From Macrostomum lignano (Eukaryota): a stretch of 64,000 nucleotides of DNA. The notes under the pieces were generated by a model. It saw only the letters and a list, made by a program, of their open reading frames with translations, did not search any database and had not been told where the DNA came from. Below, piece by piece: positions 22,501 to 28,500 of this stretch (position 1 is the first letter of the stretch; the number at the start of each line of letters is the position of its first letter). The stretch is from assembly GCA_002269645.1 (NCBI GenBank), contig NIVC01000735.1:186001-250000 (forward strand), read 5' to 3'. The position numbers and the translations under genes are program-made.

Positions 22501-25500
22501 ATGAAGCTGTCTGTATTAGTGCAGCCAATGGGACTGCCGGCCCCAGCTTGTATGATTTCACTCTGCCCAGATGTAGGGGGGGGGGGTGAGGCTCAGTTGA
22601 TTGAGTCGCCCTTTGATTGCACGACCAAGGCCTGAATTATTTAGGGATCAAATCCTGCTGGCGCTTCGGTTTCCCGCCAGGTATAAAATTGCTGACCCCT
22701 TGAAGAGGCTGGAAGCAGAGAGTTAAGCAAAGCTTGGCTTCCTGGCCTCTTCCCTTCCCCCGCCGCTTCTCCTGACCCCGCATCGGCCACCAGTTTCTAA
22801 GAGCAACAGGACTCTGAGGAAGGGTAAATCTGATTGAGATTCAATTCAGAGCGCCGCCTGCCAGGCCTTTGTGAGGGATTGAATGGCCTCGGCCACTGTC
22901 TGCGCCTGTGCAATTTACTGCCTGCCCGTCTGTTTGGTCTGGTCTGTCTGTCTGTCAGTTTCGTCTGGTCTATCTGTCTGTCTGTCTGTCTGTCTCTGTC
23001 TGTCTGTCTGTCTGTCTGTCTGTCTGTCTGTCTGTCTGTCTGTCTGTCTGTCTGCCTGTCTGTCTGTCTGGTTGCCGAATCCCCCCCCCCTAGAACTCAC
23101 CAGTTATCCCCAGCCATCAGCAGCGCATCACTCAGTCCGCAACGCTCCGCCAAAATCGGTGCCCCAATTTTGCAGGTGCTGGATGACTTTGACGGTGTCA
23201 TGCAAGATTTGGTAATTATGCTTTTCCTAGAATCGCTTCCGACCGGCTCAGCAGCCCTGCTCACTTCTCAGACTCGCTGTTGCATGCCCTGCTGTTGCAC
23301 GATTTTCATTCACACTGTTTGTAAATAAGCTTAACCAGACAGCCAGTGCAGAGCCGGTCCTCACTGGAGACTCTCCTCACTTTGCAGTCCACGGGTCTGC
23401 TTTTTTACCCGCTGAAAACGTTACCATGACAATTGAATCGCTAAAGAGTCATTGCAAACTACTCACTGTGACTCTTGTGACTTTTTAACGACTCAAACGA
23501 CTGCAATGCGACGGAGAGGCGGCTGTTGAGTCACGAGCGCTTCACGTGAGTTGCAGAATCGTAAGAGTCGCGAAAAAGTCATCCAAGAGTCGCTTAACTT
23601 TCTACTAACTCAAGTAGTCTAAATAGAGTTGTTAAAAATGCGAAATGCAATTCTAATACATAAAGTGACGCAGACGCGCTTTAGACGCAACTCAGTGACT
23701 CTACTGCGGCTCCAGCACGCCTCAGATCCGACTCTACAGTCCCAGAGTCACTTGCGTCGCCTCAGATCCGACTCTACAGCCCCAGAGTCACTTGCGTCGC
23801 CTCAGATCCAACTCTACAGTCCCAGAGTCACTTGCGTCGCCTCAGATCCAACTCTACAGTCCCAGAGTCACTTGCGTCGCCTCAGATCCGACTCTACAGT
23901 CCCAGAGTCACTTGCGTCGCCTCAGATCCAACTCTACAGTCCCAGAGTCACTTGCGTCGCCTCAGATCCAACTCTACAGTCCCAGAGTCACTTGCGTCGC
24001 CTCAGATCCAACTCTACAGTCCCAGAGTCACTTGCGTCGCCTCAGATCCAACTCTACAGTCCCAGAGTCACTTGCGTCGCCTCAGATCCGACTCTACAGC
24101 CCCAGAGTCACTTGCGTCGCCTCAGATCCGACTCTACAGTCCTAGAGTCACTTGCATCGCCTCAGATCCGACTCTACAGTCCCAGAGTCACTTGCGTCGC
24201 CTCAGATCCGACTCTACAGTCCCAGAGTCACTTGCGTCGCCTCAGATCCGACTCTACAGCCCCAGAGTCACTTGCGTCGCCTCAGATCCGACTCTACAGT
24301 CCCAGAGTCACTTGCGTCGCCTCAGATCCGACTCTACAGCCCCAGAGTCACTTGCGTCGCCTCAGATCCAACTCTACAGTCCCAGAGTCACTTGCGTCGC
24401 CTCAGATCCGACTCTACAGCCCAGAGTCACTTGCGTCGCCTCAGATCCAACTCTACAGTCCCAGAGTCACTTGCGTCGCCTCAGATCCAACTCTACAGTC
24501 CCAGAGTCACTTGCGTCGCCTCAGATCCAACTCTACAGTCCCAGAGTCACTTGCGTCGCCTCAGATCCGACTCTACAGTCCCAGAGTCACTTGCGTCGCC
24601 TCAGATCCGACTCTACAGTCCCAGAGTCACTTGCGTCGCCTCAGATCCGACTCTACAGTCCCAGAGTCACTTGCGTCGCCTCAGATCCGGCTCTACAGCC
24701 CCAGAGTCACTTGCGTCGCCTCAGATCCGACTCTACAGTCCCAGAGTCACTTGCGTCGCCTCAGATCCAACTCTACAGTCCCAGAGTCACTTGCGTCGCC
24801 TCAGATCCGACTCTACAGTCCCAGAGTCACTTGCGTCGCCTCAGATCCAACTCTACAGTCCTAGAGTCACTTGCGTCGCCTCAGATCCGACTCTACAGTC
24901 CCAGAGTCACTTGCGTCGCCTCAGATCCGACTCTACAGTCCCAGAGTCACTTGCGTCGCCTCAGATCCGACTCTACAGCCCCAGAGTCACTTGCGTCGCC
25001 TCAGATCCGACTCTACAGTCCCAGAGTCACTTGCGTCGCCTCAGATCCGACTCTACAGCCCCAGAGTCACTTGCGTCGCCTCAGATCCGACTCTACAGTC
25101 CCAGAGTCACTTGCGTCGCCTCAGATCCAACTCTACAGTCCCAGAGTCACTTGCGTCGCCTCAGATCCGACTCTACAGTCCCAGAGTCACTTGCGTCGCC
25201 TCAGATCCAACTCTACAGTCCCAGAGTCACTTGCGTCGCCTCAGATCCGACTCTACAGTCCCAGAGTCACTTGCGTCGCCTCAGATCCGACTCTACAGTC
25301 CCAGAGTCACTTGCGTCGCCTCAGATCCGACTCTACAGCCCCAGAGTCACTTGCGTCGCCTCAGATCCGACTCTACAGTCCCAGAGTCACTTGCGTCGCC
25401 TCAGATCCAACTCTACAGTCCCAGAGTCACTTGCGTCGCCTCAGATCCGACTCTACAGTCCCAGAGTCACTTGCGTCGCCTCAGATCCAACTCTACAGTC

Positions 25501-28500
25501 CCAGAGTCACTTGCGTCGCCTCAGATCCGACTCTACAGTCCCAGAGTCACTTGCGTCGCCTCAGATCCGACTCTACAGTCCCAGAGTCACTTGCGTCGCC
25601 TCAGATCCGACTCTACAGCCCCAGAGTCACTTGCGTCGCCTCAGATCCGACTCTACAGTCCCAGAGTCACTTGCGTCGCCTCAGATCCGACTCTACAGCC
25701 CCAGAGTCACTTGCGTCGCCTCAGATCCGACTCTACAGTCCCAGAGTCACTTGCGTCGCCTCAGATCCGACTCTACAGTCCCAGAGTCACTTGCGTCGCC
25801 TCAGATCCGACTCTACAGTCCCAGAGTCACTTGCGTCGCCTCAGATCCGACTCTACAGTCCCAGAGTCACTTGCGTCGCCTCAGAGTCGCAGAGAATAAA
25901 ACGCCTCAAATTGACTCTTGGGCGACTCTCTGAGGACTTTGGCGACTTGTACCTCGAAATCTCGTCGTTTTAGAGTCGTCTGTAGTCACTTCTTTCCTAT
26001 TTTGCCTGTGTCACCTGCAACGACTCCGGGCGCTTCTTGGCCTAGGTACCGTTTTTATCGGGTTAAACATGCGTGACGTGTTTGATAACTGAGTTCTCTT
26101 GTGTGCTTAATTATGATTAAACTGCCACTACCGTATGGAGCATAATTATAATTATGTTTATTGCCAGTTCACTTATCACATTTTTCTCAGGTAAACTGCT
26201 AATTATCGTTAGTTCTCCAAAGCGCGCACAGCATAAAAGTGCATGCCGAGTTTCCTGAACTGTTTTTACACACAAGCTAAGCAACCAGCTGATCCCTCGC
26301 GCAATCAAATGCACTTTTACTTGTTAAAAGTACACATTGAACTTCTTTAAAATCCACAGGTCGAGGAGGTCGGCGCCAAGAAGGCCGTCCCGTCCAGCCT
26401 GCAGCCGTCCGACTATCACCCGGTGGACTTCAAGCTCCCAGTCGGGCCCGTGTTCGCCCGGGTCGAAGGCCTCATCCGGACGCCCAACGGTCGCACCGCC
26501 CGGCCAACCCTGGACGACAACGGGGACGGCACGGTGACCTTCAAGTACCTGCCGACCGAGCGCGGCATGCACGAGCTGACGGTGCGCTACAACGACCAGC
26601 CGATCCCCGGCTCGCCCTTCAAGTTCTTCGTGGAGAGCGTGGGCACAGGTCACGTGACCGCCTACGGGCCGGGCCTCAGCCACGGCCGCACCGGGGAGCC
26701 AGCCGAGTTCTGCATCGTTACCAAGGATGCCGGGGCAGGTGAGAGATGGCAGCTTCACCTTCCATTGCTCATCATTATTTAATTTGCCTGCATTTCAGCT
26801 TTTGTTTACACACTGGCTGCTTGTTGAGTATTTCATTCATCTAACATGCGTTATAATCTTTATGCTCTACTAAGTGGCACAAACTGAGTAGTAGAATGCG
26901 ATGGCTTGGTATTTATGTTGTCTAACAAAACCTTTCTGATTTTCCAGGCATTCTTATTCTAGTAGTAGGCTATGGACGGAATTTTAGTAAGGCGAAGACG
27001 GGCTGCGCTTTTGCACTGATGATGCCTGTTGCAGTCACTGCAGACCGCAGCTTCAACAGCACACAGAGTTCAATAAGATCTAATAGATTGTTGCTAAATT
27101 GCTTTAAATTATTCCGGCACCAGTTATTAACTGCTTCATTATGCCAGCTGCTCTCTGATCGGATTGCCACTGGGGCCGTGACACTTACTATAAACATTTC
27201 GTATCGCAAATATTAGTTCATCTGATAATCACTTTCGGGCGCTTTGCGATTAGCTGCAGAAAATAGTCACGTGACCAAGCAGCACCGGGTAATAGCCAAT
27301 AGTCACGTGATCAAACAGCCTCAGATTAGTAGCCAATAGTCACGTGACCAAACAGCCTCAGATTAGTAGCCAATAGTCACGTGATCAAACAGCCTCAAAT
27401 TAGTAGCCAATAGTCACGTGATGACTCAAACAGCTTCAGATTAGTAGCCAATAGTCACGTGATCAAACAGCCTCAGTTAGTAGTCTATAGTCACGTGACC
27501 CAAACAGCCTCAGATTAGTAGCCAATAGTCACGTGACCTAGCAGCACCGGGTAATAGCCAATAGTCACGTGACCCAAACAGCCTCAGATTAGTAGCCAAT
27601 AGTCACGTGACTAAAACAGCTTCAGATTAGTAGCCAATAGTCACGTGATCAAACAGCCTCAGATTAGTAGCCAATAGTCATGTGACCAAACAGCTTCAGA
27701 TAGTAGCCAATAGTCGCGTGACCAAACAGCCTCAGTTAGTAGCCAATAGTCACGTGACCAAACAGCTTCAGATAGTAGCCAATAGTCACGTGACCAAACA
27801 GCTTCAGATAGTAGCCAATAGTCGCGTGACCAAACAGCTTCAGATAGTAGCCAATAGTCACGTGACCAAACAGCTTCAGATAGTAGCCAATTGTCACGTG
27901 ACCAAACAGCTTCAGATAGTAGCCAATAGTCGCGTGACCAAACAGCCTCAGTTAGTAGCCAATAGTCACGTGACCAAACAGCTTCAGATAGTAGCCAATA
28001 GTCACGTGACCAAACAGCTTCAGATAGTAGCCAATAGTCGCGTGACCAAACAGCCTCAGTTAGTAGCCAATAGTCACGTGACCAAACAGCTTCAGATAGT
28101 AGCCAATAGTCACGTGACCAAACAGCTTCAGATAGTAGCCAATAGTCACGTGACCAAACAGCTTCAGATAGTAGCCAATAGTCACGTGACCAAACAGCCT
28201 CAGATAGTAGCCAATAGTCACGTGACCAAACAGCCTCAGATAGCAGCCTGTGGCATTTTAGAAACTCTAAAGCCCTCTGCATGCCATAACTGATGCTCAT
28301 GAAGCCCAGCACTGACGCATGATGAAGCACCGCGCAGCTCGCATGCGGAGCAGCCGTATTTAACTGCCTCTCTCCGCACGCCGTCCCTCTATCTGTTCTC
28401 ACCCACTCTCCCGTGAAGCCAAGGGCCTGCCGAGCAGCCGCTGCGGCCGCAGCCTGAGCTGCAAGCGCCGCTACCCATTCACGGTGGCGGTGCTGCACCT

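Follow-up and report, generated by a model that had tools for sequence, protein, structure and literature searches.

A candidate hinge-1 microexon in a filamin gene of the flatworm Macrostomum lignano

Introduction

The hinge 1 region of filamins is a site of splicing variation in several animals. In vertebrates, exon 30 of FLNB is alternatively spliced at hinge 1 (PMC6103745), and the hinge-1 exon of FLNC is alternatively spliced during myogenesis (PMC7216277). RefSeq isoforms of the filamin-A-like protein from the oyster Ostrea edulis include or skip two cassettes (VLTSSDWEIS and AVSPEEYEKYLEDQ) at this linker; the two are present or absent independently of each other across the isoforms X12-X27, and all four combinations are represented. 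A truncated type of filamin is known from Drosophila, where the cheerio gene yields FLN90, a 90-kDa C-terminal filamin derived from a separate 3-kb transcript (PMC5173320). Here we analyzed the corresponding region of a filamin gene from the flatworm Macrostomum lignano. Our analysis covers a stretch of 64,000 nucleotides (nt), referred to below as the window (assembly GCA_002269645.1, contig NIVC01000735.1, positions 186,001-250,000 of the forward strand; all positions given below are those within the window), and it centers on a segment of 36 nt at 23176-23211. As judged from its splice signals and from the gene structure of related flatworms, this segment is most likely a coding microexon internal to the mRNA for full-length filamin, situated in the hinge-1 linker.

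A preliminary description of this DNA had proposed that the intron between immunoglobulin-like (Ig) repeats 13 and 14 of the encoded filamin holds an internal promoter together with a start exon for a short C-terminal filamin isoform, and/or a hinge microexon of 12 amino acids (aa). It invoked the approximately 90-kDa isoform of cheerio and the alternative hinge-1 splicing of vertebrate FLNB and FLNC as precedents, and both are in agreement with the literature cited above. The microexon part of this proposal is sustained by our data; the promoter and start-exon part gained no support, and several points speak against it.

Results

Gene structure and splice signals at the filamin hinge 1 region

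The region under study is part of a filamin gene that is encoded by the + strand. Our model of this gene comprises 16 exons within the window and, beginning with the first Ig repeat, reads through 6879 nt with no internal stops until the stop codon is reached. The best named homologs are flatworm proteins (from Cichlidogyrus, Macrostomum lignano and Schistosoma), with identities of 51-53%. One of the exons (20432-20777, + strand), recognized by tblastn comparison with cestode and oyster filamins and by a PDB match, encodes the last part of Ig12 and the complete Ig13, the equivalent of vertebrate repeat 15, and terminates in phase 0 at position 20777 (...IPNGEIKQE|gtgagt). The next large exon (26360-26738, + strand) likewise starts in phase 0, with VEEVGAKK, and its PDB matches assign to it the remainder of the linker and Ig14, the equivalent of vertebrate repeat 16. 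The intron that separates these two large exons (20778-26359) has a length of 5582 nt.

Among the PDB structures, the best match of the upstream exon was filamin-C (7ouu), and the best matches of the downstream exon were filamin-A (2k7p) and filamin-B (5dcp). Since 7ouu presumably covers Ig14-15 and both 2k7p and 5dcp presumably cover Ig16-17 of the vertebrate proteins, the junction between the two exons corresponds to the hinge-1 position. The alignment to fish, oyster and flatworm filamins places the 12 residues encoded by the 36-nt segment in the linker between Ig13 and Ig14. In the 16-exon model, 13 Ig repeats precede the segment and nine follow it. Both the hinge-1 assignment and these repeat numbers agree with what the preliminary description had stated.

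The 36-nt segment (23176-23211, + strand; phase 0 at either end) reads ttttgcag|GTGCTGGATGACTTTGACGGTGTCATGCAAGATTTG|gtaatt together with its flanks, encodes 12 residues without a stop codon and is in frame with both of its neighbors, i.e., the exon ending at 20777 and the exon starting at 26360. It divides the large intron into a 5' part of 2398 nt (20778-23175, + strand) and a 3' part of 3148 nt (23212-26359, + strand), the latter consisting mostly of minisatellite DNA. We scored splice signals with donor and acceptor position matrices that were built from the sites of the same filamin gene (12 confident donors and 10 confident acceptors). The acceptor of the microexon at 23175 (ttttgcag|G) attained 8.3 bits and ranked first among the 471 AG dinucleotides of the intron, and the microexon as a whole ranked second among 874 frame-preserving, stop-free AG..GT candidates of the intron. 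Its donor (GTAATT) reached 2.9 bits, which corresponds to rank 20 among the 331 intronic GT dinucleotides. By the ranks of its acceptor and of the candidate exon, the microexon is more than a chance occurrence, and its splice sites are usable, the acceptor being strong and the donor weak.

As predicted from the DNA, the microexon would be spliced between the exon ending at 20777 and the exon starting at 26360 and would lengthen the flexible linker that connects Ig13 with Ig14 by an acidic stretch of 12 residues. All of the junctions involved are phase 0, so inclusion or skipping of the microexon never alters the reading frame. The linker measures 31 residues with the microexon and 19 residues without it; in the flatworm homologs, as read by eye from the alignment, it measures 25-36 residues.

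Counterparts of the microexon in other flatworm filamins

The annotated filamin of Schistosoma turkestanicum (P0003; assembly GCA_944470395.2, OX103976.1, locus L001:13276-13311) possesses a phase-0 microexon of 36 nt between the orthologous exons (...NGRFNQK|gtaagt ... ag|AVNPEELMNDIT|gtaagt ... ag|DQRVQHV...). It shares with the M. lignano segment its length, phase 0 at both ends and a preceding exon that ends in ...G.(F/I).Q(K/E), and the encoded peptide AVNPEELMNDIT is, like the M. lignano 12-mer, acidic and carries a Met near its C-terminal end. The two microexons differ in their peptides, which have diverged to the point that the ungapped score is not significant, and in their donors, a strong gtaagt in Schistosoma versus gtaatt in M. 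lignano. In Schistocephalus solidus and at two loci of Cichlidogyrus casuarinus the upstream intron is absent, and the 12 codons are fused to the upstream exon. At these three loci, a phase-0 intron is found exactly 12 codons past the ...Q[K/Y] landmark, and the 12-codon units end as AVNPDELVPTVI|gt, AVSPDEFASRFV|gt and VVTPDELSRPEP|gt.

Both boundaries of the microexon are consequently matched in Schistosoma, and its 3' boundary is matched in Schistocephalus and at the two Cichlidogyrus loci. The 5' boundary, represented by the exon end at 20777, has a match not only in Schistosoma (…NQK|gt) but also in L005, a contig with a compact eukaryotic filamin gene (…TQE|gt). For the M. lignano segment, splice signals, frame and position are thus established, and the same 12-codon unit, bounded at the same intron position or positions, is present in four other flatworm filamin loci. 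The 12-aa hinge microexon put forward in the preliminary description is thus backed by the 36-nt counterpart in Schistosoma, by the three loci with an intron at the 12-codon position and by the oyster cassettes.

Two further observations concern the linkers of these related filamins. The compact eukaryotic gene, which is present in the metagenome loci L005 and L006 and carries P0172, has introns of 40-130 bp with the exception of a single one of about 2.2 kb; this sole large intron is located at the shared exon boundary, after ...NGHFTQE, which is the hinge-1 position. In Schistocephalus solidus, the transcript-derived filamins P0279 and P0280 differ by an insert of 88 residues, rich in Pro, Ala and Gln, early in the rod; here, too, a low-complexity linker of a flatworm filamin is included alternatively.

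Paralogous filamin proteins of M. lignano carry VIEEAEIVEKQE in the same register as the microexon peptide, and the ungapped comparison of the two 12-mers gave a BLOSUM62 score of +6 (empirical p ~0.012). Several points weigh against the microexon. The p value just given rests on a register that was picked after looking, and the comparison of the microexon peptide with three neodermatan 12-mers was not significant on its own (p 0.15-0.37). Since the similarity of the peptide to its neodermatan counterparts is not significant, the case for the microexon rests on gene structure. Furthermore, the 12 confident donors of the gene score between 5.2 and 13.5 bits and have, every one of them, a G at position +5; the donor of the microexon scores below all of them and lacks this G. 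The G+C content at third codon positions (7 of 12 by hand count) is lower than that of the flanking exons, 12 codons being too few to weigh. Finally, the Schistosoma filamin model is a database annotation, and the inclusion of the microexon in the mRNA of M. lignano is inferred. Our searches with the filamin protein returned no match above 67% identity to the query and no same-species protein of this gene; in a search among representative proteins, nothing exceeded 53% local identity.

A pseudo-exon that is never spliced would account for the weak donor (2.9 bits) and for the lack of significant similarity between the 12-residue peptide and its neodermatan counterparts, and such pseudo-exons are common, given the 874 frame-preserving AG..GT candidates in the intron. 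The linker would then read ...IKQE|VEEVGAKK..., and the match to the other flatworms would be a relic or a coincidence. We regard this as decidedly unlikely, however, since the segment equals the Schistosoma microexon in size, phase and position, since its 3' boundary is an intron position conserved at four loci, and since its acceptor is the best of the intron. Moreover, the linker without the segment would be shorter than that of every flatworm homolog compared. The microexon belongs to a known kind, the filamin hinge-1 cassette.

By analogy with such cassettes, the inclusion of the microexon may be regulated; this notion is based on its weak donor, on the long introns that flank it and on the alternative splicing of the hinge-1 equivalents in oyster and vertebrates. 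A TGCATG hexamer, a motif of the RBFOX type, is located at 23281-23286, 70 nt 3' of the donor of the microexon. Since TGCATG is frequent in the window (30 occurrences, about one per 2 kb), it constitutes only a weak hint of regulated inclusion.

Evaluation of an intronic promoter for a short filamin

According to the preliminary description, the intron 5' of the 36-nt exon contains a CCAAT box, a TATA box and an ATG-free stretch that ends in a splice donor, and the exon itself contains an ATG from which an isoform of 869 aa could be translated. All of these landmarks are present. The CCAAT motif (22525-22529, + strand), one of four in the intron, is located 157 nt 5' of the TATAAAA motif (22682-22688, + strand), the candidate promoter element, which contains one of the two TATAAA sequences of this intron. 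The proposed donor of a non-coding first exon (AAGG|GTAAAT) was found at 22824-22829 (+ strand). The interval 22690-23215 contains merely three ATGs. The first of these, at 22883, is past the 22824 donor and would be intronic in the proposed model, so that no ATG intervenes between the TATA motif and the donor (22690-22823), as described. The second (23183-23185, + strand; tgctggATGa) is located in the microexon out of frame, and the third (23200-23202, + strand; ggtgtcATGc), which follows 17 nt downstream, is in frame with the exon at 26360 (VEEVGAKK) and represents Met9 of the microexon.

The open reading frame (ORF) that begins at 23200 extends over 23200-23211, 26360-26738, 29258-29512, 29671-29933, 30177-31488 and 31973-32361. 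After splicing it comprises 2610 nt and encodes 869 aa with a mass of 91.2 kDa, ending in ...GSPFRINVT, values that reproduce those given before (2610 nt, 869 aa, ~90 kDa). We detected eight significant Pfam Filamin stretches in this product and counted nine repeat ends by eye; by arithmetic only, it keeps the C-terminal repeats, including the last, dimerising one.

In the proposed model, an intronic TATA/CCAAT promoter would direct transcription from about position 22712, a non-coding exon extending to 22823 would be spliced onto the microexon, and ribosomes starting at the ATG at 23200 would produce a filamin of 869 aa resembling FLN90. Speaking for this model are the existence of the motifs, the lack of an ATG between the TATA motif and the donor at 22824, and the exact ORF arithmetic with a product that would keep nine repeats, the C-terminal one among them. 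The functional 90-kDa C-terminal isoform of Drosophila, which is made from a separate 3-kb transcript, provides a biological parallel (PMC5173320). Of the 34 TATAAA sites in the window, only 2 are followed by a donor that reaches 2.9 bits or more with no ATG in between; this pattern is mildly unusual, but it was chosen after the fact.

The motifs themselves, however, occur at background density. On its + strand, the window contains 14 TATAAA and 70 CCAAT sequences, and a CCAAT positioned 40-250 nt 5' of a TATAAA was encountered seven times on the two strands of the window. No clear initiator motif could be read by eye 25-35 nt 3' of the TATAAAA sequence. CCAAT boxes are usually located at -60 to -100 relative to the start site; the CCAAT motif considered here lies about 185 nt 5' of the presumed start site and thus beyond the usual distance. 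The proposed first-exon donor scored 3.1 bits (rank 17 of the 331 GTs) and is outscored by every one of the 12 confident donors of the gene (5.2-13.5 bits); with its sequence GTAAAT it does not fit GT[G/A]AG, the dominant donor motif of M. lignano (PMC8629364).

The ATG at 23183 had previously been regarded as a caveat of weaker context. This assessment has to be revised, since 23183 and 23200 both possess a G at -3 and neither possesses a G at +4. The proposed mRNA has its first AUG at 23183; this AUG is not in the filamin frame and, after splicing to 26360, opens an ORF of 68 codons that extends across 23200. Because this ORF overruns the in-frame start, the filamin frame would escape most scanning ribosomes. 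Nor is the Met conserved among the flatworm counterparts that we examined: it is missing from the equivalent 12 codons of Schistocephalus and of the two Cichlidogyrus loci, and a Met near this position is found only in Schistosoma. The upstream CCAAT, TATA and GT motifs are most likely chance intronic sequence, and the short isoform from an internal promoter is unsupported rather than refuted; we consider it very unlikely.

As candidate FLN90-type short isoforms, we considered three filamins of approximately 830 aa from our protein library (P0172, P0206 and P0246), which have a conserved MPSG start. They were rejected via P0172, the sole one of them examined: P0172 is the product of an ORF caller and derives from one large exon of the compact full-length gene, and the group was for this reason dismissed as independent support for the promoter model. 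The ~830-aa library proteins begin at MPSG inside the next Ig repeat, where the window reads RTPNG and has no Met. Since the gene caller split the filamin of L005/L006 into separate ORF "proteins", short "filamins" in large protein libraries can be artefacts. A leech (Helobdella) protein among the short filamins, P0262, is a gene model. Exact look-ups of the 869-aa product, of an 878-aa product that starts at a leader AUG and of a 796-aa product with an MHELTV start found none of them, and a difference of one residue suffices to defeat such a look-up.

We also considered other owners of the intronic motifs. We rejected the idea that the TATA and CCAAT motifs might belong to a non-coding RNA gene or to a nested gene: Rfam provided no credible match to either the window or the intron, and no convincing ORF is present in the unique intron segments. 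For the unique parts of the intron 5' of the microexon, we found no further copies within the 64-kb window, and a transposon origin of these segments was rejected on this basis.

Trans-splicing as a route to a short filamin

In M. lignano, about 30% of the genes are trans-spliced to a leader of 35 nt that ends in ATG, and the top motif of trans-acceptors is [T/C]TNCAG (PMC8629364). The host species thus has a leader capable of supplying a start codon, although the 64-kb window does not contain the leader gene itself, and the acceptor of the microexon, TTGCAG, fits the motif. Since the leader ends in AUG and the microexon starts in phase 0, the AUG of the leader would be in the filamin frame. 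Trans-splicing of the leader to the acceptor in front of 23176, with either the full pre-mRNA or an intron-started transcript as the substrate, would therefore create an in-frame Met (MVLDDFDGV...) and a short filamin of 878 aa. In flatworms, acceptors used for cis-splicing have been documented to serve as internal trans-splice sites as well, although most internal trans-splice sites were judged to be low-level noise (PMC12582326).

Several aspects argue against this route. The trans-acceptor motif differs little from the consensus of acceptors in general, and among the ten confident cis acceptors of this filamin gene, one fits it as well. Any phase-0 acceptor, including that at 26360, would serve equally, and nothing consequently singles out the microexon. 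While trans-splicing is a more coherent route to a short form than the promoter and start exon, we judge it to be very unlikely indeed. Taking the two routes together, the production of a short filamin, either from an intron-started transcript or by trans-splicing of the leader onto the phase-0 acceptor at 23176, appears unlikely.

Other features of the window

The two introns that flank the microexon are rich in simple repeats. The 5' intron contains a minisatellite with 23 copies of a 32-bp unit (21651-22382) and a (GTCT)35 microsatellite (22928-23070); the 3' intron contains a minisatellite with 54 copies of a 40-bp unit (23718-25885). Long and highly regular minisatellites, such as this 40 bp x 54 array (97% identity) or an array of roughly 3 kb that is rich in A and T, were found in introns and intergenic DNA at 5.5-6.8, 10.4-12, 21.6-22.4, 23.7-25.9, 33.8-35, 49.3-50.2, 55.9-58.9 and 63-64 kb, and they make up much of the non-coding sequence of the window.

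A large exon of the filamin gene (15535-16560) encodes a Gln-rich low-complexity stretch of about 150-190 residues (at ~15.75-16.2 kb) that contains repeated units and sits between two extra Ig repeats, Ig7 and Ig8. In the aligned cestode and oyster filamins, we found no counterpart at the same place. The stretch could be an additional flexible hinge.

Downstream of the filamin gene, two tandem paralogs of short-chain dehydrogenases are encoded at 43.8-44.9 kb and 45.6-46.7 kb. Their best matches are one M. lignano protein (79% identity) and otherwise bacterial or archaeal metagenome proteins of at most 43% identity, along with one further match of 51% over 60% of the query; this pattern may just reflect the composition of the database. 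Exons with leucine-rich repeats at 51-55.6 kb (+ strand) correspond to an M. lignano gene that is annotated as possessing LRR, COR and protein kinase domains (ROCO/LRRK-like, 1674 aa).

An alignment to the M. lignano contig NIVC01002944.1 covers about 10 kb of the window, non-coding DNA among it, with an identity of 92-97%. Relative to this contig, the window possibly represents another haplotype, a duplicated copy or a sibling species. The matching region of the contig is assembled as an inverted duplication: in the 20 kb of this contig that we compared (L007), positions 1-9272 correspond to 56.9 to 48.2 kb of the window in reverse orientation, and positions 9635-20615 correspond to 45.8 to 56.4 kb in forward orientation. 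The palindrome is either real or an artefact of the assembly. L007 covers only the region of the dehydrogenases and of the leucine-rich-repeat kinase and contains no filamin.

Discussion

Exons of 36 nt within repeat-filled introns of 5.6 kb are easily missed by gene predictors, and the coordinates reported here should be useful for the annotation of filamin in Macrostomum. Together with the corresponding exon of Schistosoma, the M. lignano microexon suggests that the arrangement of a hinge-1 microexon is old within the Spiralia. If its inclusion is regulated, it would represent a further case in which hinge 1 of a filamin is tuned by a small cassette, as in FLNB, in FLNC and, by annotation, in oysters.

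A short isoform would, if true, be biologically more interesting, as it would provide a regenerating flatworm with a scaffold resembling FLN90; if generated by trans-splicing, it would represent a flatworm route to such a protein that is different from that of Drosophila. The hypothetical product of 869 aa and 91 kDa resembles FLN90 of cheerio in lacking the actin-binding domain and in keeping the C-terminal repeats (PMC5173320). The two cases differ in that FLN90 has been shown by transcripts, mutants and antibodies, whereas the window offers a motif pattern alone, with an out-of-frame AUG against it.

In oysters (Ostrea edulis and relatives), as in M. lignano, the cassettes are positioned at the hinge-1 linker, where they follow immediately upon the last strand of the Ig repeat before it. 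The cassette VLTSSDWEIS and the M. lignano peptide have in common a VL start and an SDWE/DDFD-like core, and AVSPEEYEKYLEDQ resembles the AV[NS]P[DE]E motif of the neodermatan sequences. Since this AVSPEE... cassette resembles the hinge segment of the neodermatans, the 12-codon unit probably predates the flatworms. The oyster differs from M. lignano in possessing two cassettes of 10 and 14 residues instead of a single one of 12, and its isoforms are computational RefSeq models. Beyond the pair of hinge-1 cassettes, small alternative segments occur elsewhere in the oyster filamin isoforms (P0120, P0266-P0278), which have four independent segments of this type including the hinge-1 pair; a region of 23 residues after the third Ig repeat is wholly missing in some isoforms, while only its last 12 residues are missing in others.

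In vertebrates, as proposed here for M. lignano, hinge 1 is encoded by a single cassette exon in the linker between repeats 15 and 16, and skipping of this exon eliminates the hinge but leaves the reading frame intact (PMC6103745, PMC7216277). The exons that flank the microexon in the window match the structures of these same vertebrate repeats best. The vertebrate hinge-1 exons are longer, with 24-33 residues, and are sensitive to calpain; we detected no sequence similarity between them and the M. lignano 12-mer.

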